Of a stretch of 64,000 bases of DNA, positions 11 to 12,488 are shown piece by piece. The DNA is from Hamiltosporidium tvaerminnensis FI-OER-3-3. Taxonomy: Eukaryota; Fungi; Microsporidia. Both the position numbers and the translations under genes were made by a program. Location: the NCBI GenBank assembly GCA_022605425.2, contig CM061254.1:1-64000 (forward strand), in the 5' to 3' direction. A model generated the notes under the pieces. That model saw nothing but the letters and a program-made list of their open reading frames with translations. It was not told where the DNA came from and did no database searches. Within the stretch, counting starts at the first letter, position 1. Each line of letters starts with the position of its first letter.

Positions 11-668
11 CCTAACCCTAACCCTAACCCTAACCCTAACCCTAACCCTAACCCTAACCCTAACCCTAACCCTAACCCTAACCCTAACCCTAACCCTAAC
101 CCTAACCCTAACCCTAACCCTAACCCTAACCCTAACCCTAACCCTAACCCTAACCCTAACCCTAACCCTAACCCTAACCCTAACCCTAACCCTAACCCTA
201 ACCCTAACCCTAACCCTAACCCTAACCCTAACCCTAACCCTAACCCTAACCCTAACCCTAACCCTAACCCTAACCCTAACCCTAACCCTAACCCTAACCC
301 TAACCCTAACCCTAACCCTAACCCTAACCCTAACCCTAACCCTAACCCTAACCCTAACCCTAACCCTAACCCTAACCCTAACCCTAACCCTAACCCTAAC
401 CCTAACCCTAACCCTAACCCTAACCCTAACCCTAACCCTAACCCTAACCCTAACCCTAACCCTAACCCTAACCCTAACCCTAACCCTAACCCTAACCCTA
501 ACCCTAACCCTAACCCTAACCCTAACCCTAACCCTAACCCTAACCCTAACCCTAACCCTAACCCTAACCCTAACCCTAACCCTAACCCTAACCCTAACCC
601 TAACCCTAACCCTAACCCTAACCCTAACCCTAACCCTAACCCTAACCCTAACCCTAACCCTAACCCTA
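11..668 (+). repeat. Telomere, (CCCTAA)n / (TTAGGG)n, about 110 units
   Basis: Uninterrupted CCCTAA array at the contig start, in the orientation expected for a left chromosome end. Confidence 0.99.
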
Positions 669-1195
669 CAAACCATAGGCCGTTCTCTAAACTTTCACAT
701 GAACAAATATTACAAGTACTGGATGGGAAATCCCCATTCACACCGTCAAGATACATTTTTATTTACATTAACAATATTAAAGTCAATAAAATAAAATTCT
801 ACAAACTTGCGATAGAGTCTCTATCCGAAGGAACAAGTCGATATATTATCAACATGGATTTCATAAACGATGAAACTGCTGAAATTATCTGCCGAGAAGA
901 CAAAAAAGAAATAATAAACGAAGCATTTATCAAACTTTCTAGTAATTCATTAAGTAGATCACCAGAAATTGACAATAATGGAACTTTACACATCTGCATG
1001 CTTTTTGAAAGAATGAGAAAGATAATCAACAGAAGTACAAACACAAATTTAAAACTAAGACAATTAGCAGTAAGTATTCTATATACAAAGAGATCTGAAC
1101 TGCTCGACGTGTTAAAAAGTGTTAACATTGAGGCCAACGATGTTAATATGGAACCACGATCGGGATCTCTCAGTGATAACCATATAAATGGTTAG
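668..1195 (+). CDS. Retrotransposon ORF1, N-terminally truncated by the telomere (first internal ATG at 854)
   Basis: The frame of ORF 854-1195 stays open for 62 more codons back to the telomere (TNHRPFSKLSHEQILQVLDGKSPFTPSRYIFIYINNIKVNKIKFYKLAIESLSEGTSRYIIN-MDF...). Its C-terminus aligns with the element 2 remnant, and it overlaps the ORF2 ATG. Confidence 0.75.
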   Translation, partial: TNHRPFSKLSHEQILQVLDGKSPFTPSRYIFIYINNIKVNKIKFYKLAIESLSEGTSRYIINMDFINDETAEIICREDKKEIINEAFIKLSSNSLSRSPEIDNNGTLHICMLFERMRKIINRSTNTNLKLRQLAVSILYTKRSELLDVLKSVNIEANDVNMEPRSGSLSDNHING

Positions 1196-3932
1196 AACAA
1201 TTGGATTTATAAACGTGGGCGGTTTATCAAACTTGAAAATAGAAAAAATAAATGAAATTCTTATAAAACACAAACCCGATATACTATGCATTGCTGAGAC
1301 ATGGAGGAATAATATTTTTCCGCTACACAATGATTATAGAATAGTGGCCGTTAAGTCAGCCATAGAGGTTACGAACAGATACGCAAAAAAGGAGGGAATG
1401 ATAATTATATCTAAAAAACATATGGAAGTAAGAAAACTTGAAAACATTACGACGGCAGGCCTCTGCATTAAACACGAACAGACAATACTGGTCTTTATTT
1501 ATAGAGAACATTCAAGCTCTGATGAAAAAATATTAAACGAAGAACTTAGTTCATACACAGATGCAAATATTATCTGCATTGGCGATTATAACTTGGAACA
1601 AAGAGCAAATCTAGAACAAGACGTGCTGAATAACCATGCTAAGTACGGCTTAGCAGAGGTAAACTTGCACACGAAAACTTTTATACATAACGAAAAAAGC
1701 TCTACCCCAGATAAAGTTTTCGCTAATTGCCCAGTCATTACGGATATAAAAACTATAGAAAACATAAATCATAAGCTAATAGTAGCACTTCTTCCAAAGG
1801 CACAGAAATGTGAGCCTCCTAAATACAAAATAAACTTGATTAAAAATTCTGATATAAGAAATATGATAACAAAGAAAATAGAACAATATACGGAAAGGTC
1901 TATAAATATCTTAAAATTTCTAAACGTTAACAATAAATGCTTACTACTACATTCCATACTTATCAAGAGTATGCGAAGAATTGAACGTCGAGAAAGACTT
2001 CATGACCGTTCAAATCCTATTATTCAACATGTAAGAAAGCTGCGCGATAAAGCAAGGAAAACAAATGCGAAAGAATATGATGAATTTAGACGCGAGGTAA
2101 AAAAGCTTGCTAAACGATTTGATAACTCAAGCCTACCACGAACAAACTTAAGATACACAAGCTTACAAGCTTCTGAATTGGAAAAGGTTATCTTATTCAA
2201 TGGCAAGACTGAACGAAAGCATACTAAAAATATAAGAGAATTACTAGATAGTTTTATCTTAGACGGAAATATAAAAGAAACAGAGAAAACTATAAAAGAA
2301 ATTAAAAATTTCTACGGAAAAACCAATATGAAACACAATTACAACCAACAAGACATGATTACAAGCTTCACACTGGCAGAAGTTTCTGCTATGATTAAAA
2401 ATCTGAAATCGGGAAAGTCGGGTGGGATTACAGGAATCAGAAATGAATTTCTTAAAATATGCCCAGAAAACTTTATAAATGAACTTACGAATCTATATAA
2501 TGCAATATTAGATACACAACAAATCCCCGACTCTTGGAAAAGGCATAAAATCAAGCCCATTCCGAAGGATAAAGATAATTTCAGACCAATCGCCTTAATT
2601 GAACAAACGAGAAAGCTTTTTGAGAAGCTATTATTGACAAAGATAGACATAAAGTTGCATAGACAGCAAACAGGTTTCAGAGCAAAACATTCCACTATTA
2701 ATCACGCACTTGCATTAGATACAATTCTAAGACACGTTAACGGAAAATATATTTGTGTAACACTAGACATAAAGAAAGCGTATGACAGTGTCTTTAGAAA
2801 AAACTTGTATAAGAAACTTCTGAGACAACAAAACTTTTCGATCAAAGATACCACATTGATTGCAAACTTGATAGAAAACAACAGCTATACTATATGTCAG
2901 AAAAATACTGGTAATATAAAATTTAAAACGGCTGCCTTGGGTCTACCTCAGGGAAGTATTATCTCTCCTATACTATTTAATATCTTTATAAACGACATTA
3001 TTTCTTATATTCCGAAAAAATATAGATACCACATTTTCTTATACGCGGATGATATAGTCATCTACTCGACATGCATGGTGGCTCTAAATACCATAATTGA
3101 CGGACTTTGCAAACATGCGGCACACAATAGATATTTATTTAATCCCAAAAAATGTTTCTATAATGCAACGAAAGATTTGAACATATTTATATATGGAAAG
3201 AAAATTGAAAAACAGAACCCGCTTAAATATCTTGGGTTTTATTTCAATAACCGCTGTGCCGATACAAACGAGACTTTAAAGACCATACGGAAAAAATCTA
3301 TAAAGGCTGCGGTTATTACAAACAGAGCATTTAAAAGATCAGAATTTAATTCCTTTCATAACTTACCACAACTAAAGCTACGTGCATATAACATGTACGT
3401 TCGTCCACATATAGATTACCACGCTGTACTCTTAGGATGCAATACAACTTTTAACACTGCGGCAGACCGGATACAAAAAGGTGTTATTAAATTTATGTAC
3501 AATATATACTACCGAACCCCTTCCAAGATTATCTATGCGCTATTCCCGATAGAATCAATTCCCCAGAGAGTTGAAAGACTAAGATATAGTCTTGGCGAGA
3601 GAATACTACAAATGAAAAAGACGATAATAAGATTTGCCTTTCTTAGACTATTCAGTAAGAACATCAGAAATATCAAGAACGGAATTAAAACAATTAGAAA
3701 AAAATTTCCTAATATGGACGCTAAAGAAAGATTTAAGAAACTGAACAAAGAAAATCTTAGGGTTAATTTTACTATTTTCCAAGAAATTGAACTTTTAAAA
3801 AAGTATAATTTTCAAAATAGCAACAAAGCCAATTTTGAAAGAATAACAAGAATCTTGAGTCCATTTAGAAAAGAAAAAGAAATTTCAGAAATTTTAAACT
3901 TATTTCAAATGGCAAATATTGCCCGCCCATAG
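1188..3932 (+). CDS. Non-LTR retrotransposon ORF2: APE-type endonuclease plus reverse transcriptase (914 aa)
   Basis: APE motifs: INVGGL, PDILCIAETW, IGDYN, TF..STPD, INH. RT motifs: KSGGITGI.NE, WK..IKPIPK..FRPIAL, QTGFR, LDIKKAYDSV, GLPQGSIISP, YADD, KYLG. C-terminal Y..YVRP.IDY. No RNase H or CCHC knuckle seen. Confidence 0.97.
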   Translation: MVRTIGFINVGGLSNLKIEKINEILIKHKPDILCIAETWRNNIFPLHNDYRIVAVKSAIEVTNRYAKKEGMIIISKKHMEVRKLENITTAGLCIKHEQTILVFIYREHSSSDEKILNEELSSYTDANIICIGDYNLEQRANLEQDVLNNHAKYGLAEVNLHTKTFIHNEKSSTPDKVFANCPVITDIKTIENINHKLIVALLPKAQKCEPPKYKINLIKNSDIRNMITKKIEQYTERSINILKFLNVNNKCLLLHSILIKSMRRIERRERLHDRSNPIIQHVRKLRDKARKTNAKEYDEFRREVKKLAKRFDNSSLPRTNLRYTSLQASELEKVILFNGKTERKHTKNIRELLDSFILDGNIKETEKTIKEIKNFYGKTNMKHNYNQQDMITSFTLAEVSAMIKNLKSGKSGGITGIRNEFLKICPENFINELTNLYNAILDTQQIPDSWKRHKIKPIPKDKDNFRPIALIEQTRKLFEKLLLTKIDIKLHRQQTGFRAKHSTINHALALDTILRHVNGKYICVTLDIKKAYDSVFRKNLYKKLLRQQNFSIKDTTLIANLIENNSYTICQKNTGNIKFKTAALGLPQGSIISPILFNIFINDIISYIPKKYRYHIFLYADDIVIYSTCMVALNTIIDGLCKHAAHNRYLFNPKKCFYNATKDLNIFIYGKKIEKQNPLKYLGFYFNNRCADTNETLKTIRKKSIKAAVITNRAFKRSEFNSFHNLPQLKLRAYNMYVRPHIDYHAVLLGCNTTFNTAADRIQKGVIKFMYNIYYRTPSKIIYALFPIESIPQRVERLRYSLGERILQMKKTIIRFAFLRLFSKNIRNIKNGIKTIRKKFPNMDAKERFKKLNKENLRVNFTIFQEIELLKKYNFQNSNKANFERITRILSPFRKEKEISEILNLFQMANIARP

Positions 3933-3940
3933 TACTACCC

Positions 3941-3962
3941 CACAGCTTTTGGCCAAGTTGTG
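3941..3962 (+). promoter_or_regulatory. 3'-UTR stem-loop with UUGGCC loop (element 1)
   Basis: CACAGCTT-TTGGCC-AAGTTGTG: 8-bp stem with one G-U pair, 9 nt after the stop codon. Confidence 0.7.
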
Positions 3963-4335
3963 AGAAACGTTAAAGCAAACTTAAAAAAAAAAAATAAAAA
4001 ATAATAAAATAAAATAATAGATATACTCATAATGAAAAATATTTTATAACGTAAAAACAAAAATAATAAAATAGAAAAGAAAAACCAAAGATATTTTAAT
4101 TACTTAAACCAAAATGAGTATATCTTATACGTAATAACCACTATTTTGAAACTGTGAGAAAAATTAAATATTTTTTATAACAAAAGAAAAATATAATAAT
4201 TTACTTTATTTGAAAACCATGTGAAAATTTTTTAAGCAATCGACGGATTCGGAATCATTAGCAAAAAATTGATATTTTTTTATTTGCTAGAATATGAACT
4301 TGCAAGAAACCTTCAAAAACATTAAGAAACGTTAC

Positions 4336-4473
4336 GGCAGGGAGCCCGAAAGGGACATTACTGCCATATTTTTATAATTTAAAAATCACCGGAGTTTTAT
4401 GAAATATGTTGACTACCCCGGTCAACATATAATTGTAGTGAGGAGGGGGTGTTGCTCCATTGAGTCTTTCTGG
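4336..4473 (+). other. Structured RNA module (GAAA-tetraloop motif plus a two-hairpin domain), copy 1
   Basis: GGCAG-GGAG-CCC-GAAA-GGG-ACATTA-CTGCC. Perfect 10-bp hairpin at 4404-4430 and a second hairpin at 4442-4458. Confidence 0.6.
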
Positions 4474-4538
4474 AATTTAAATACATTTTTTGTTTTAAAT
4501 TTTCAGTTTGTTAAATTATTTAAATAAAATCCATTTTC

Positions 4539-4697
4539 CCTAATAACAATAATCGTCTTAAGAGATTAGTCATTAAACTGATACAAAGTAGGGGAAGGGA
4601 CTTGTTGAGTATGTTAGAAAGCCTTAACATTCGGGCCAAAGAAGTTAAGGAAGAAGATGCACCTGAAAAAAACCTAGATCTTACCTATGAGTTCTAA
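4539..4697 (+). CDS. ORF1 C-terminal remnant of element 2 (5'-truncated; absent from the ORF track)
   Basis: NNNNRLKRLVIKLIQSRGRDLLSMLESLNIRAKEV aligns without gaps to element 1 NTNLKLRQLAVSILYTKRSELLDVLKSVNIEANDV. Both overlap the ORF2 ATG in the same +1 register. Confidence 0.75.
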   Translation, partial: PNNNNRLKRLVIKLIQSRGRDLLSMLESLNIRAKEVKEEDAPEKNLDLTYEF

Positions 4698-7428
4698 AAT
4701 AGGTTTTATTAACATAGGAGGCTTATCAACAATAAAAATTACTAAAATAAATAACTTACTACAATTACATAAACTAGACATCCTGGGTGTTGCAGAGACA
4801 TGGCGTGATGAAATAATTCCCCTGGATAACAACTACAAGATTCTGACAACAAAGCCATCATTAAGAGTAGACAGTAGGTATTCTAACAAAGAAGGGATGA
4901 TAGTTATAACGCGGAAGAACATTAAAGGAGAGATAATTGGAGAGATTACGGATTTTGGAATTTCAATAAAATTCGATAATCATATCCTTGTCTTTATCTA
5001 CCGTAGCCTGTCTAGCAATGATCATAATATAATAAAACCTGCAATACATGAGTTAACAAATCAAAAAATAATAATACTTGGAGATTATAACCTCGAGCAA
5101 ACTCGTGAATTGGAAGACAAAGTTTTGAATAATCATATGAACTATGGTCTATACGAATTAGATCTCCATGCAAACACATACAAACATAAGAACAAAATAT
5201 CTTCACCTGATAAAATTTTTTCTAACACCCCAATAAGAACAGATGCCATAGAAATTATAACAATAAACCACAAATTGATAATAGCAGAAACCTTTGAATT
5301 GCCTACTTCAGCCATTCCCGGGTATAAAATAAATTTAATAAAAGATAACAAAATAAGAAGTAAAATAACAAAGAGAATTGAAAAACTTGTTACAAAAAAT
5401 AAAGTTATATTGCAAAACCTAAATATTGAGGAGAAATGTAACTTCCTACACAAAATATTACTGAATGCCACGAGAATAATTCGGATCGTAGATAAGAAAA
5501 CAAAAAGAGGTAATCCAATAATTCAACACACAAGACAATTACGAGAAGCCCACAGAAACATACACACTGATACTTATAAGAAACTATGTTCTGACGTTAA
5601 AAAATTAAGAAGAAACTTTATTGAGGAAGAAATGCCTTTGGGTAACTTAAAACATGTTGGTTTAGAAGCATGTGAAGTGGAAAAAATAATAAAGTTCTAC
5701 GGAAAGGCTCAACCCAGAACAAATCTTTACCCTAAAGACTTGATAGACAAATTTGTACTAGATGGAAGGTACAATAAAGTAGAAAACACAATACAGGAAA
5801 TTGAAGATTACTACAGTAAAAATATTGAAAAAGGAGAATTTCGTGAAAACAAGATAACAGAGATCACGCTAGAAGAAGTTCTTAACAATATTAAAAGTCT
5901 TAAATTAGGCAAATCCGGAGGAATATCGGGTATAAGGAATGAATTTCTTAAGATATGCCCTAAAAACTTTGTTTCCGAACTTACAGATTTATTCAATAAG
6001 ATTATAGTAGACCAAGAAATTCCATCGTCATGGAAATTCCATCGAATCCAACCGGTACCGAAAGGAAACGACGACCTCAGGCCCATATCGCTTATTGAAG
6101 AAACAAGAAAACTTTTTGAAAAAATCATCTTAAGCAAATTTAATGTCCAACTTCATAAGCAACAGGCTGGTTTTAAGACAGGACATTCATCGCTTAACCA
6201 CGCGCTTGCACTCGACACACTCTTAAGACACAGCAACGGCGATATGATAAATGTAACACTTGACATTAAGAAAGCATATGATTCAGTTGACAGAAATAAA
6301 CTTTACAGGAAACTAATAAAACAGCAAAAATTTTCTATTAGAGACACAAAACTTATAGCCTACCTTATAGAGAATAACAAATACACTCTGTGCTCAAACA
6401 AAGCCACATCATTAGTGAAGACTGCATCAATAGGACTACCGCAAGGTAGCATTATTTCACCAACATTGTTTAATATATTTATTGATGATATTATTCACTT
6501 TATACAGAAAAGATTTAGACAGATGGTATTCCTATATGCTGACGATATTCTAATATGCGCACCAACGGTCCAAATTGCCCAAAATATCATATTGGGAATG
6601 GAAAGGCACTCAACGATTAATAATTACAGATTCAATCCGGATAAATGTTACTACAATACAACAAAAGATATCTGTATCAAAGTATACAACACTAATCTTA
6701 CAAAACAGAGCCCTCTAAAATACTTAGGTTTCTTCTTTAATAATAGAGGGGCAGACACGTTAAAATCTACCAAGATCATAAGACAGAAAGCTGTTAGGGC
6801 TGCAGTAATAATGAATAAAGTCATGACAAAGAGCATATTTTACAGAGAAGAAGATAAATTCAGAATGAAACTAAGAGGATATACTACGTTTGTGAGACCA
6901 CACATTGATTACTTTTCGCAATTATTAGGCTGTCAAAAAACCTTCCTTGATCAGGTAGATAGAATTCAGAAAGGTATAATAAAATACCTATTTAAGATTT
7001 ACTATCGAACACCCTCAAAGATAATTTACGCACTCTTCCCAATAGAAAATGCTTACCAAAGAGCAATTAGATTGAGGTACAATATAGCGTATAAACTAAA
7101 AAGAGCAAAAAACACAACTATTAGAAAATTATACTATAGGTTTAACTCAAAGAACCTGAAAAACATGAAAAACAATTATGTCAGATACCAGAAAATTTAC
7201 AAAAATGAAAGCTTTAAGATTAAATTAAAAAGAATTTTAAAAGAAAATTTAAGGTTAAACTTCAGAACATTTAGTTGGAGTAACACACTAAAAAAATACA
7301 ATTTCAAAACATGCACTAAAGACGAATTCTCACAGTTTTTAAATGTTATACGAACAGAATACAAAAGAAGAGATCTTGGTGATATTTTATTAAAATTTAT
7401 CTTGATATACATAAGCCTCCCACATTAA
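4687..7428 (+). CDS. Non-LTR retrotransposon ORF2: APE-type endonuclease plus reverse transcriptase (913 aa)
   Basis: INIGGL, DILGVAETW, LGDYN, SSPD, INH, LRPISL, QAGFK, LDIKKAYDSV, GLPQGSIISP, YADD, KYLG. Collinear with 1188-3932. Confidence 0.97.
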   Translation: MSSKIGFINIGGLSTIKITKINNLLQLHKLDILGVAETWRDEIIPLDNNYKILTTKPSLRVDSRYSNKEGMIVITRKNIKGEIIGEITDFGISIKFDNHILVFIYRSLSSNDHNIIKPAIHELTNQKIIILGDYNLEQTRELEDKVLNNHMNYGLYELDLHANTYKHKNKISSPDKIFSNTPIRTDAIEIITINHKLIIAETFELPTSAIPGYKINLIKDNKIRSKITKRIEKLVTKNKVILQNLNIEEKCNFLHKILLNATRIIRIVDKKTKRGNPIIQHTRQLREAHRNIHTDTYKKLCSDVKKLRRNFIEEEMPLGNLKHVGLEACEVEKIIKFYGKAQPRTNLYPKDLIDKFVLDGRYNKVENTIQEIEDYYSKNIEKGEFRENKITEITLEEVLNNIKSLKLGKSGGISGIRNEFLKICPKNFVSELTDLFNKIIVDQEIPSSWKFHRIQPVPKGNDDLRPISLIEETRKLFEKIILSKFNVQLHKQQAGFKTGHSSLNHALALDTLLRHSNGDMINVTLDIKKAYDSVDRNKLYRKLIKQQKFSIRDTKLIAYLIENNKYTLCSNKATSLVKTASIGLPQGSIISPTLFNIFIDDIIHFIQKRFRQMVFLYADDILICAPTVQIAQNIILGMERHSTINNYRFNPDKCYYNTTKDICIKVYNTNLTKQSPLKYLGFFFNNRGADTLKSTKIIRQKAVRAAVIMNKVMTKSIFYREEDKFRMKLRGYTTFVRPHIDYFSQLLGCQKTFLDQVDRIQKGIIKYLFKIYYRTPSKIIYALFPIENAYQRAIRLRYNIAYKLKRAKNTTIRKLYYRFNSKNLKNMKNNYVRYQKIYKNESFKIKLKRILKENLRLNFRTFSWSNTLKKYNFKTCTKDEFSQFLNVIRTEYKRRDLGDILLKFILIYISLPH

Positions 7429-7436
7429 AATGAAAC

Positions 7437-7460
7437 GGTTGACTATTGGCCTAGTTAACC
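7437..7460 (+). promoter_or_regulatory. 3'-UTR stem-loop with UUGGCC loop (element 2)
   Basis: GGTTGACTA-TTGGCC-TAGTTAACC: 9-bp stem with one G-U pair, 9 nt after the stop codon. Confidence 0.7.
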
Positions 7461-7488
7461 TACAACACACAAAAAAACAAACACAAAA

Positions 7489-7702
7489 GGCGGGGAGCCA
7501 GAAATGGACGATACCGCCATATTTAAATATTTGGCTTGATTTACACTGCGAGAAGAGATTGGGGACTAGTAACGAGCGCGAGTTGGCCATGGGAGTTAGA
7601 CCCCCCAAAGACACAGTTGCATTAAAGGGGGTCTTATTGCATATATGAGCGCGGATCATTAATACCCTTTATGTAAGGGCTATACAGTAAGAGATAAGTC
7701 AA
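7489..7702 (+). other. Structured RNA module, copy 2
   Basis: GGCGG-GGAG-CCA-GAAA-TGG-ACGATA-CCGCC. AGACCCCC (7598-7605) is complementary to GGGGGTCT (7627-7634), and TTGGCTT/AAGTCAA could form a closing stem. Confidence 0.6.
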
Positions 7703-8039
7703 TCGTAAAGAGGTGATAGTTTTATTAAAAACTAGCAGTGTGCATAAAAGGTGATGACGACTGACGAGTAGACAAGGATGTTGTTTTCTTGCCTATTAAG
7801 GGTTGTTGTATGATGATCTTTAGGAGTTTTAGCTTGATTGAATATAGCCTGAGCCTAAAAGGAGTTAATTCCTGCTGAATAAAGTATGACAATAGGACCC
7901 CTTGTTTGATGTATAACATAGTCATCGGGTGGTCTTAAGGCTAGGAGAGTAGTTTAGTTAGTTTAAGACTTGTTAATAGTGACCCTAAAACTCTATAGTA
8001 AAGGTGGGTTAATCATTTCTAGAACTTTCTAGAAATATA

Positions 8040-10520
8040 AAAATATTTAAATAAAATTTCTTTTTCCTACTTAAAAAGTTTTTTTAATCTTATTTTATTG
8101 TTTTATTATAATTTCAAATTTTTTATATCTTAATGTTAAATTAAAATTGTTTCCTATCTAAAACATTTTTTATATTTCTTGCAATAATACGTACCTCTTT
8201 TTTATTTTTTTTACACGAAAATTTGAATTTTTTTTATTAAGAACTTAATTTGAATTTTCATTAAAAGTTTTTACCTGATTTTTATATTATCTATTTTGTC
8301 CGTCATAGAAATATTGAACTTATGCTGGTATATGTGTTACACATAAGCTTTGTTTCTATTTAAGATAAATAGTGTTATACTCCAATTTCGTTTTTTTTAT
8401 TTACATGATACTATTTTTTATATTTAGGTATATAAATCAATTATTTACATGTCTCAAAAATATATTTGTTCGTTACCTAAGTCCTTAATTCGGAAAACTT
8501 TGGTTTTCCTATTTTTTAGTGAGCATTCTTGATGTTTTTCTTGGATTAAGTCTAATTGTATTTAAATTTAAATTTTTGATTTGAAAGCAATAAAATAAAA
8601 TATTTTAATGTATTTTACACTTACACTAACTAATTTTTTAGTTCAGACAATATTACATTAAACTTTAAATTTTACAAAACATAAATGGAAAAACCATATT
8701 TTATCTAATTATATTCTGATAGCCTGTATTCAGTTATGGAATCTTCTTAATTCGACATATAAATCTTTAAATTTGTAATATGTAAGGTCAATGGCCATTT
8801 TTCACTCTCTAAACTACCATTTTTCTTTTTATATGAACCTTCTAACATTTACGTAACTAATAATCTCTTTTGGCATATTTTTATATTTTAGTGCCTCTGG
8901 TTTGTTTTTAAAGTTAGAATTTCATTGGTTTTTTGTCTTTCTTAGATTTTCTATATAATATATACGTTTTTAAAAATTCGTTCTAAAAGTGTTTGCTAAA
9001 CCGAAGGTTTGAACAATCGTTATAAAGTCAGTATAGTCTAAATTGGTGCCTCGTAATTCAGTTTGTGTCGTTTTGCAATAGCTTAGATTTATATTCTTTT
9101 CTTTCTTAATCAGCTGTTATTTTTTTCTTAGAACTTTTAATTATTTTTATTTAGTTTTTACTTTATCTAATACATGGTTTACTTTATTTTTCAAAATTTT
9201 ATTTTTTTAAACTCTAGACTGGTTTTTTATAACAATTTTGTATTTTATAAGACGGTTCGAGTATGGTTTGAAAATTTGTTTTTAAAGAAGGTTTAAAGAA
9301 TGCCTAAACTTTCGTTGGTTTTAGGTGTTTGACATTCTTTTAAAATAATTTACTTTTCTTAAGAGTTTTTATGTGTTTTTTTTTAATTTTTTAAACTATT
9401 TTCTAAATTTATTAGAATGATTTTTACTTATTTACTGGAATTTTTTAGTTGTAAAGTTTTTTATTTCTTTTAACCTATACTTACAATTTTTTTAAGTTTT
9501 TTATATGTTTTTACGTGTTCTTTCCCGGTTTTTTACGTTTTCTCTTAAATTTAGCTGTTTTTTCGTGTTTTTTTACAGCTTTTGGAATTTCCTAAATTTT
9601 TTATTTTTTTTTTAAAACTTTTTAAATTTTCAATTTTATAATATTTAGAATTTTAGACTTCCTTTATGTTTTATCTACTTATTTATTGATCGGTATATCT
9701 TCCGAGTGTCTTTTAACGTATTAATAAGAATTTTTTTTGTAAAACTGTATACTAAATGAACAATTATTGGTTTTTTGACAAAAATTTGAAGATTTTTTTA
9801 AAAAATTATCATTTTTAGAATTATAGCTCGGTAAATTTAGAAAAATTACCCCCGTAAAATTATTAAAGCCTAAACCTTGTAAAAATTACTTTTAAACAGT
9901 GCAGGTTTAACATATAGAATTTATTATATATGTTATATATTACTTTACTTTATTTTATTTTGATTTTATCTTTTTAATAGAGCTAGAATTTTATTCTCGC
10001 TACGAAATTCGAAGAATTTCTTAAAAAAAAAATATTTTTGGAAAAAATATTTATGTTACCATTCTTAATTACTATTTTCTGTTTTTATTAAGGAAAAATT
10101 TTGGAAAAATTTTTTAAATACAGTAAATAAAAATATAGATTTGGAAGATTTATGTTTGGTTTAATAAATTTCGAATAACTTCCATCTTTCAACAAAAATT
10201 ACTGTAAACTCTTAATTAAGATTGAATTATCCTTTTTTATAACTTAAATTTTAAGTTCTTTACTCAAAAATAGAAAAGTTAAAGCAAATATTTGCAACTA
10301 AAGGTGATCTCTCTTTAAATTTAAAATATTGTAAGATTTTAACTTGATTCTGTATGTAATAGTAGTTATTTTTTGCTGGTTTAAATTTAATTTTTATTTT
10401 ATAAAAAATTACTTTTTATTTTTATATCCTATTAAATATGTTTTAAACTAACTGACAGCATTCATCTTTAAGGAAATTGAATAAAATATAAATCGTAATT
10501 CAAATAATGGTAAAAAACAT
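8040..10520 (-). pseudogene. Probable decayed coding region (unidentified)
   Basis: Strong T skew on + (A-rich minus strand), short protein-like open stretches, and a hydrophobic start MFFTII*ITIYILFNFL at 10520. Many stops; no family recognised. Confidence 0.25.
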
Positions 10521-11247
10521 ATGTTTTTTGACTATAGTAAAAATAGAAACTTATATTTTTATAAGTATTATTAATTTACCTAAAAAGGAAATACCTTTGT
10601 AAATCTGTAAATATCTTATAAATCTTACTTATATCTAGTTTTACCAACTTAAAAACCCTATAGAGAATTCAGTAATGAATTGTACTAATAAAATTTTGAT
10701 TCAAATTTAGGTTTGTTTACACAATTAAGGAAATTTTGGTTTTCGAAAAAAGTAAATTTAGTTTTGCATGTTTTGAGTTAAAAAGTTACATTTTCTTCAA
10801 ATTTTATTTTTTTTTAAAAAAAATTCGAAGAATGTTTTTTGTAGTATCAAATTTTTGTTGAAAAACTATTTATGTACGTCAATTTTGAAATAAATCAACA
10901 AACCTATAGATTATTATGTTTCTTTTCGAAGAAAAGAAAGCGAAGGCAAGTAATATAGACACTTTTTGTATATATTTAATAAATATTCGTGATAAAATTA
11001 TTATTTATCATTTAAGCTAAAGAAAATAAGTTATACGTACAAAAAATAAATAAATTTTTTATTTTTTCACTTGTTAGATACGGATCATAATGGTATTGTG
11101 GATATCTGACAGGTTAAAGCCTTTATTGATATACCTTGGAATTTTATTCTTTAATAAAATACAATTTATTGACTTTACTTTTCGAAAACCATATACTTAT
11201 TTTTTCTTTAATACTTTTACTTTTCCTATTTAATATATTTTGAATAA

Positions 11248-11435
11248 ATATTCTCAATGAGAATATCAAAAGTGTCTCTCTAATAAAGTTTAAGTATAAT
11301 TGAGATTCTCGAAGAGAATATCAGAATTGAAGTTCATTTAAAAGACATAGGAGGGATATTCTCGAAGAGAATATTAGAATTGTATTATATTTAATGTATT
11401 ATTAATGTATATTTTCGAAGAGAATATCGGAAATG
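11248..11435. repeat. Four palindromic ~27-bp repeats with unique 26-28 bp spacers (period 53-55 bp)
   Basis: Consensus ATATTCTCGAAGAGAATATCAGAATTG at 11248, 11303, 11356 and 11409. Confidence 0.8.
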
Positions 11436-11797
11436 CAAAACTTTTTTAATTTTTATTATTTAAAATGATTTTACATTATTATTTTTTTTGATTAAGCAAT
11501 GACATAGGTAAAAGAAATTTAAAGAAATTTAGAAAGAATTTATTTGTCTATGTGAATTCATGAAATGATATTTTTGAAGATAGTAAAATATTTTTATAGG
11601 CGAGTTTTGTTTTAATTAGGTAAAATATGATTTGTAGGGTATTTATTTTTTTACAATATATTTAGCCTCTCTCTTAGAGATGAGTAAGTTAATAGAGATC
11701 TTATCAAGCTTTAGGAACGTATCATTATTATCTAAAAATTTGCAATTGGTTTAAAAAAAAAATATAAAAATATAAATATAGGTGAATTTTTAATATC

Positions 11798-12230
11798 GTG
11801 GCATCTTCTACTGTGGTACTCTTACTATGTCTATGGGTTAGGGATTATCTATCTCTTAGTAATAATCCTCCGATACCCTGATATATTTCTTTTTCACCAT
11901 ACTAATGTAGAAGCCATGAAACGCATGCCACAAATACGGAACGATTTCGTTCTTACTCTAATATTCGCAGCTGAATGTGCTTTTACTCTTACTATCTACG
12001 CTGATATGGTTTGTTAAAGGGCTTATGTAAGATTATTTGCATAAGTCTGGACATAAATACATAGGGTAGTAAAAAACTAACTCGTTCGATCTCGTATAAC
12101 AGTCGATTTTACTGCAATAAGTGAATTTATTCACTTATGAAAATGTTGATATATAATCGTATTAACATCAATACCTGTTTTACAGTATCTCTAAGGCAAT
12201 GAGCTCGATAACGGGACAATATTGCCTATT
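11798..12230 (+). ncRNA. Candidate structured non-coding region
   Basis: Nested stems 11798-11817/11896-11931 and hairpins at 12019-12048, 12117-12138, 12143-12168 and 12195-12226. The mismatches are G-U on the + strand. Confidence 0.4.
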
Positions 12231-12350
12231 TAGATGGAATACTTTTTTAAAGAATGTATATAAAGCAAGCATTTTTAGATTTAAAAACTTATAATACAAT
12301 AGGGCCTCTTCTATATGAAACTAAATAGAAATTTCGAATTATCTATTTAT

Positions 12351-12488
12351 CCCTAATCTTACCAACCTAACTTGCTCTTTGTGTATCTAACCCTCTCCTA
12401 ATAAACCTCAAATCAAAATCAAATATTGTATATGTCTTTGGAAAAACTAATTTCCGTTTAAATAAATGTGTTCGCCCTAACCCCTAAC
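12351..12488 (+). repeat. Degenerate interstitial telomere-like hexamers
   Basis: CCCTAA at 12351, CTAACCCT at 12387, CCCTAACCCCTAAC at 12475-12488. Confidence 0.5.

Follow-up and report, generated by a model that had tools for sequence, protein, structure and literature searches.

A covarying RNA hairpin in the 3' non-coding regions of chromosome-end LINEs of the microsporidium Hamiltosporidium tvaerminnensis

Introduction

Stringent LINEs such as eel UnaL2 (L2 clade), as well as R2, carry short conserved structures in their 3' untranslated regions (UTRs) that let the reverse transcriptase (RT) pick its own RNA, and in the UTRs of both groups structure is conserved more than sequence. At chromosome ends, the Drosophila elements HeT-A, TART and TAHRE and the Penelope-like, endonuclease-deficient Athena elements build head-to-tail terminal arrays with their 3' ends facing the centromere, and short telomere repeats at the 3' end of Athena pair with the G-overhang. 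To our knowledge, none of these terminal elements has been described to carry a small conserved hairpin comparable to the one reported below, in which the internal loop is invariant. In SART1Bm of Bombyx mori, the element's proteins recognise their own 3' UTR, also in trans, telomere-like letters of the UTR can start reverse transcription by annealing to the target, and stem-loops lie inside the UTR and not at its very end (PMC7265360).

Here, we analysed a window of 64,000 nt (the whole stretch of DNA under study) at a chromosome end of Hamiltosporidium tvaerminnensis, in which a (CCCTAA)n tract is followed by three head-to-tail, 5'-truncated LINEs of the type encoding an APE-like endonuclease and RT (APE+RT). 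Hamiltosporidium, a parasite of water fleas, is a microsporidium with a large genome. Like SART1Bm, its LINEs are APE+RT elements aimed at telomeric repeats; unlike SART1Bm, which has a poly(A) end and inserts within (TTAGG)n, they end in C-strand telomere repeats and have no poly(A) in their genomic copies. The hairpin described below shares no sequence similarity with the SART1 hairpins, and the recognition function that has been demonstrated for SART1 is one that we only propose for it. UnaL2-type stem-loops adjoin the 3' end of their elements, whereas this hairpin lies 200-1,100 nt upstream and a different hairpin is terminal. As in HeT-A, TART, TAHRE and Athena, the elements form head-to-tail terminal arrays with their 3' ends pointing inward; unlike that group, they keep an APE-like domain, and Hamiltosporidium retains telomerase-type (TTAGGG)n caps (the window tract; PMC10542269). 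We found no description of the motif or of telomere-associated Hamiltosporidium LINEs in the genome paper (PMC10542269), in two surveys of microsporidian transposons (PMC7313128, PMC4202319) or in general literature searches.

Results and discussion

Three LINEs at a chromosome end

The following features define the layout of the window:
11-667, forward strand: (CCCTAA)n terminal tract, capping the 5'-truncated element 1
1188-3932, forward strand: ORF2 of element 1, 914 aa, APE-type endonuclease and reverse transcriptase
4687-7428, forward strand: ORF2 of element 2, 913 aa, APE and RT
8054-12487, forward strand: 5'-truncated copy of a third LINE family (family H), consisting only of about 4.4 kb of non-coding 3' region

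Elements 1 and 2, which belong to families A and B, have the same orientation, and their ORF2 proteins, each combining an endonuclease/exonuclease/phosphatase-type domain with a reverse transcriptase, are 50% identical. ORF1 is present in element 1, 5'-truncated, and is represented by a tail remnant only in element 2; a domain search with ORF1p returned zinc-ribbon matches, all of them sub-threshold. In the protein collection, the only close relatives of ORF2 were annotated reverse transcriptases of H. tvaerminnensis and H. magnivora, and the other relatives reached at most 33% identity in partial alignments. A tRNA scan of the window detected no tRNA.

The third element was considered as a SINE-like non-autonomous element, and this was rejected since the same region is contiguous with an intact ORF2 in other copies. 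The ORF2 of family H, 41% identical to that of element 2, is free of internal stops at C2:1800134-1802836 and C16:183326-185794 and has one TAG at C13:49541-52243. In the copies on contigs C13, C2, C16 and C3, similarity runs unbroken from this ORF2 through a long non-coding stretch to the hairpin. The non-coding 3' region of the family is about 4.75 kb long and contains tandem repeats; the repeats at 11248-11435 fall within the window's copy of this region.

A hairpin shared by the three elements

A small hairpin occurs once in the 3' non-coding region of each element:
4336-4365, forward strand: hairpin copy 1, in element 1 (family A)
7489-7518, forward strand: hairpin copy 2, in element 2 (family B)
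12195-12226, forward strand: hairpin copy 3, in family H, located with a covariance model

In copy 1, a GGAG/ACAUUA internal loop separates the 5-bp outer stem from a 3-bp inner stem, which is capped by a GAAA loop, and copies 1 and 2 are each followed by an AUAUUU tail (4366-4371 and 7519-7524). The initial annotation had reported two 36-nt stretches, hairpin and tail together, with six differences, four of them in two compensatory pairs and two in the internal loop, and it was accurate on every count. Over the 30 nt of the hairpin, copies 1 and 2 differ at six positions. Two base pairs account for four of them, outer pair 4 being A-U in copy 1 and G-C in copy 2, and inner pair 3 being C-G and A-U, respectively; the 3' strand of the internal loop accounts for the remaining two. 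Copy 3 has the same architecture, with A-U in place of G-C at outer pair 5, UGAG as the 5' loop strand, a 4-bp inner stem that includes a U-G pair, and an AUAA loop.

The fold proposed initially was reproduced by RNAfold, which adds a G-C pair between the last G of GGAG and the C of ACRWUA and leaves a bulged A beside the inner stem, that is, an extension of the inner stem. Copies 1 and 2 fold with -14.1 and -14.0 kcal/mol (z of -3.7 and -3.0 against dinucleotide shuffles), and their reverse complements fold less well (-11.5 and -9.4 kcal/mol); the local fold of copy 3 has -10.4 kcal/mol (z of -3.8). Within longer contexts, pair probabilities were 0.99-1.0 for copy 1 (628-nt UTR) and 0.90-0.97 for copy 2 (645-nt UTR). 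When full 3' regions were folded, six of seven families retained the hairpin in the minimum-free-energy structure (pair probabilities 0.77-1.0); the family H hairpin is absent from the minimum-free-energy fold of its 390-nt context and folds locally.

Pairing is kept while sequence changes

Ten families were compared, with ORF2 proteins that match the ORF2 protein of element 2 at 33-56% identity. Their hairpins are 80% identical, and the 60-nt flanks on the two sides are 54-58% identical, compared with 55% for shuffled sequences. As remarked early on, the flanks of copies 1 and 2 do not align, save for the AUAUUU tail and a few short blocks.

Standard pairs fill 94.6% of the pair cells in an alignment of 26 distinct sequences, and when the 3' partners were slid by 1-3 columns as a control, only 26-64% were paired. 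None of 500 shuffles reached the observed covariation score or the observed number of double-changed cells, a count that ignores relatedness. The variants were therefore mapped onto a phylogeny built from the 345 C-terminal residues of ORF2, with stops read as X and no frames repaired. This tree joins the B clade, with G-C at outer pair 4, to the C clade, which has A-U there (support 0.94). G-C recurs at this pair in the F/J/x54 group (support 0.97 with x53), in which J has a G-U intermediate. Family H alone has A-U at outer pair 5, and inner pair 3 reads A-U in B but U-A in D. A fourth inner pair, additional in x54 and H, is C-G in the former and G-C in the latter. On this tree, at least five independent double substitutions preserved pairing, over 8 or 9 pairs. 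In addition, seven distinct sequences contain G-U pairs. Together, these data substantiate the structured RNA motif with compensatory changes that had been suggested from two copies.

The letters of the internal loop behave differently from those of the helices. Its 5' strand GGAG (UGAG in H) and its 3' strand ACRWUA are nearly invariant. The terminal loops vary: five families have GAAA, GCAA, GUAA or GAGA, and the remaining families carry UAAC, GAAU, AAUA, AUAA or a 3-nt loop. A GNRA tetraloop, once listed as a defining feature, is thus present in about half of the families and cannot define the motif. The UAAC loop is a member of the UMAC class, whose fold mimics that of GNRA loops. Inspection of the alignment gave no kink-turn: the strand layout, with 1 nt and 2 nt beside the tandem, is unsuitable, and a G-A/A-G tandem can form only with ACGAUA or ACAAUA, not in the ACAUUA or ACGUUA families.

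These data show that the hairpin is an RNA-level structure of the sense strand under purifying selection, and that the constrained part is the asymmetric internal loop, while the letters of stems and terminal loop are free as long as pairing is kept. Energies, loop types and G-U pairs all favour the sense strand. A fixed internal loop between free helices would fit a protein-binding site more than a tertiary RNA contact.

The initial annotation had raised two other explanations. The first is a short conserved peptide, suggested by similar 12-residue peptides that the window copies 1 and 2 encode in the one frame. We give it a negligible chance, as in-frame stops lie 1-20 codons away on both sides of nearly all copies, TAA falls inside the motif in the same frame in the UAAC families, and indels of 1 nt and longer shift the frame between families. 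Moreover, the substitutions track pairing and not codon position, and no open frame spanning the motif is conserved across copies.

The second is a self-cleaving ribozyme, of which the hairpin would be a part and which would process element transcripts. As in loop B of the hairpin ribozyme (RF00173), the internal loop lies between two short helices and shares a few letters of its 3' strand, and there is a loose letter likeness that extends to the outer stem; the loop sizes differ, however, and neither a loop A domain nor a junction is present. Rfam was scanned three times at E <= 10, twice with short input sequences, and the earlier impression that the motif matches no known family was upheld: across Rfam, with its hairpin, hammerhead, HDV-like, twister, pistol, hatchet, SRP and other families, only chance-level matches were obtained (E 0.2-10), with bit scores far below gathering, none of them a ribozyme or SRP and none covering the hairpin meaningfully. 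With lax filters, too, no ribozyme family appeared at E <= 10. Only about 45 nt are conserved, conservation ends about 15 nt past the hairpin, and no second domain, junction or pseudoknot partner accompanies it. Furthermore, the hairpin lies inside the 3' region, far from the element ends, where cleavage would have no obvious purpose. A processing ribozyme is thus very unlikely.

Placement in the 3' region

In all families, the hairpin is located 3' of an ORF2 stop and 5' of the same element's 3' terminus, which assigns it to the 3' region of the upstream element rather than to a 5' leader; the 5'-end location that had been left open at first is thereby contradicted. The ORF2 stop and the hairpin are 46-68 nt apart in families B, D, E, x53 and x54 (60 nt in element 2); in family A this spacing widens to 403 nt, and in family H to about 4.47 kb. 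On the other side, 200 to about 1,140 nt, including a variable region, separate the hairpin from the 3' terminus.

The spacing of 403 nt in family A is due to 353 nt of A-rich sequence between the two copies of a 9-nt direct repeat. This sequence occupies 3973-4325 in element 1, with the repeat GAAACGTTA at 3964-3972 and 4326-4334; it is common to all family A copies, separates a stop-proximal block from the hairpin, and has the appearance of an insertion or duplication.

Among sequencing runs, none recorded as RNA contains the sequence that was searched for, and four host-labelled RNA runs, which hold no parasite reads, gave 0-2 stray reads, in the A-rich part only.

A fixed distance from the stop codon, as co-translational capture would have it, was considered and is weakened by families A and H. 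Because the hairpin lies at widely varying distances from the stop codon and from the 3' end alike, the anatomy does not dictate a strict model of either kind, be it initiation-site or co-translational capture.

The variable distance from the 3' end would be tolerable if the hairpin acted during or after reverse transcription, either as a pause or boundary for the RT or through a cDNA complement that aids second-strand priming, and a stable local hairpin forms on both strands, as such a role might use. We nevertheless regard this role as quite unlikely: the single-stranded loop letters are almost invariant and, with the G-U pairs and the GNRA/UAAC loops, speak for sequence-specific reading of sense RNA and not for mere stability, and the 5' truncation points of copies are not clustered at the hairpin.

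Occurrence in Hamiltosporidium genomes

A degenerate pattern matched 13 times in the genome, and its reversed control did not match. A covariance model, R1, built from 13 variants, found 26 sites, of which 25 were real after inspection; the remaining one, a weak match at C7:329607, was rejected as chance in apparently ordinary coding sequence. Both results put the resemblance well above chance. The same model detected 10 further strong copies at 8 loci in 4 other H. tvaerminnensis and H. magnivora assemblies, so that the search of this and related genomes envisaged in the initial annotation yielded 25 and 10 copies, respectively. In public metagenome contigs, a 20-letter structured pattern gave five matches, all in the same GC-rich bacterial gene and without inner-stem pairing, which we attribute to chance.

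All 25 genome copies lie at most about 125 kb from a contig end, and in every one the 3' end of the element faces the chromosome interior, copies at low coordinates being on the forward strand and those near high ends on the reverse strand. Every model match with E < 0.001 falls within these LINEs, and the covariance model found no hairpin outside them in the genome.

The hairpin copies and the ORF2 copies of the LINE group, at 13 or more contig ends, all lie near these ends and point inward. Exceptions to this pattern are a few weak ORF2 matches (25-31% identity), including C1:621216 and the near-end matches at C7:929054, C5:1150881 and C15:1436809. The weak matches probably belong to other LINE groups.

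The family H copies on C16 and C3 have a largely open ORF2, have lost the outer stem (CC to AA) and have lost GAG from the loop; the decayed hairpins are found in locus L062 (about 7470-7510) and in L063 (reverse strand). The hairpin is thus lost from older, more internal copies, showing that the motif decays once a copy is no longer under selection.

The restriction to these LINEs also bears on whether the hairpin is read by host factors as an mRNA-level regulatory element, namely a stability, export or localisation signal, or, together with the tail that follows it, as a proximal 3'-end processing signal. The hairpin is followed by a semi-conserved tail of about 10-15 nt (UAUUUA-AUA) that looks similar to the start of the box at the element terminus (see below), with which it has UAUUUAAAUA in common. 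Alternative polyadenylation has been reported for this species (PMC10542269), and the short distance between stop codon and hairpin in five families would suit such a signal. The distances in families A and H would not, however, and the lack of any copy outside these LINEs is unusual for a general host signal. We consider these two forms of host reading, taken jointly, possible but rather doubtful.

Element ends and arrays

The 3' ends of the three elements in the window are as follows:
4517-4543, forward strand: 3' terminus of element 1, with box TATTTAAATAAAAT (4517-4530), a pyrimidine run and CCCTAA (4538-4543)
8044-8069, forward strand: 3' terminus of element 2, with box TATTTAAATAAAAT (8044-8057), a pyrimidine run and CCTA (8066-8069)
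12457-12467 and 12475-12487, forward strand: 3' end of the family H copy, with box-like TTTAAATAAAT and CCCTAACCCCTAA, respectively

The order of features at the end is the same in every family: the box TATTTAAATAAAAT follows a short hairpin and precedes a pyrimidine run, after which come one or two C-strand telomere repeats of variable length. Copies of the same family diverge beyond these repeats. The letters of the terminal short hairpin differ by family, an example being 8017-8034 in the window. The box contains AATAAA, and the genomic copies carry no poly(A). The terminal stretch of the window's family H copy spans 12456-12487.

In full-length arrays of other Hamiltosporidium assemblies, the ORF1 ATG of the next element directly follows the upstream 3' terminus. 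The ATG abuts the upstream terminal CCTAAC(CC) at L053:463-491, L056:676-704 and L059:1693-1723. The TATA-like terminal box and the C-rich letters are where a promoter with a very short leader would sit, and the 3' end of an element may drive its downstream neighbour, as in HeT-A.

Since upstream 3' regions may hold promoters in such arrays, the hairpin could also be envisaged as a DNA-level element, for example a subtelomeric protein-binding site or a cruciform that forms part of a HeT-A-like promoter for the downstream neighbour. This has only a slim chance of being correct, because the compensatory changes keep pairing and not letters, and wobble pairs and loop types differ between the strands. 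Moreover, it is the TATA-like box that is found at the junction, from which the hairpin is 200-1,100 nt away.

On contig C13 (L040:2298-2480), two terminal boxes lie 163 nt apart. The pair looks like an extremely 5'-truncated copy, of about 160 nt of 3' end, stacked behind a longer copy.

A candidate recognition site

On balance, we favour, with modest confidence, the reading that the hairpin is a cis-acting recognition site for the RT or ORF1p of the element. The LINEs form a Hamiltosporidium-specific APE+RT group that accumulates head to tail at chromosome ends, and the internal loop would be where a protein encoded by the element docks, be it the ORF2 reverse transcriptase or ORF1p. Docking would mark the element's own RNA for assembly of the retrotransposition particle, as in stringent LINEs. 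Reverse transcription would then start 200-1,100 nt downstream of the hairpin, at the 3' terminus, where the terminal C-strand telomere repeats may anneal to the G-rich chromosome end or position the RNA on it. As in the recognition stem-loops of other LINEs, the hairpin occupies a sense-strand 3' non-coding position and is conserved by compensatory changes while its flanks diverge. It does not adjoin the 3' terminus as in UnaL2, and this separation from the start of reverse transcription counts against a recognition site; a host RNA-binding protein would be an equally possible partner.

A bolder form of this proposal, which we hold only tentatively and think rather improbable, takes the whole 3' region for a miniature telomerase RNA, in which the hairpin would anchor the RT and the terminal CCUAACCCUAA would align on the G-rich overhang. 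Whole elements would then be added to chromosome ends without cutting, and the TATA-like terminal box would serve as promoter for the neighbour added earlier. If true, a microsporidium would possess a HeT-A/TART-like end-extension system alongside telomerase.

Stem-loops in the 3' UTR that mark LINE RNA are already known, and the Hamiltosporidium hairpin is unusual in its distance from the start of reverse transcription. Taken alone, the hairpin is what would be expected of a stringent LINE, and is useful rather than surprising. It is a small, strongly covarying RNA element without an Rfam family that marks a whole group of chromosome-end LINEs, and its covariance model provides a simple marker for these LINEs, and hence for old chromosome ends, in related genomes. 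If the internal loop is the docking site of the RT, it would offer a 30-nt handle on template choice by a telomere-directed LINE.

Besides the hairpin, a TTGGCC block is found shortly after the ORF2 stop of elements 1 and 2 (3941-3962 and 7437-7460). It recurs in families A, B, C and F and is probably a second conserved element of the 3' UTR.
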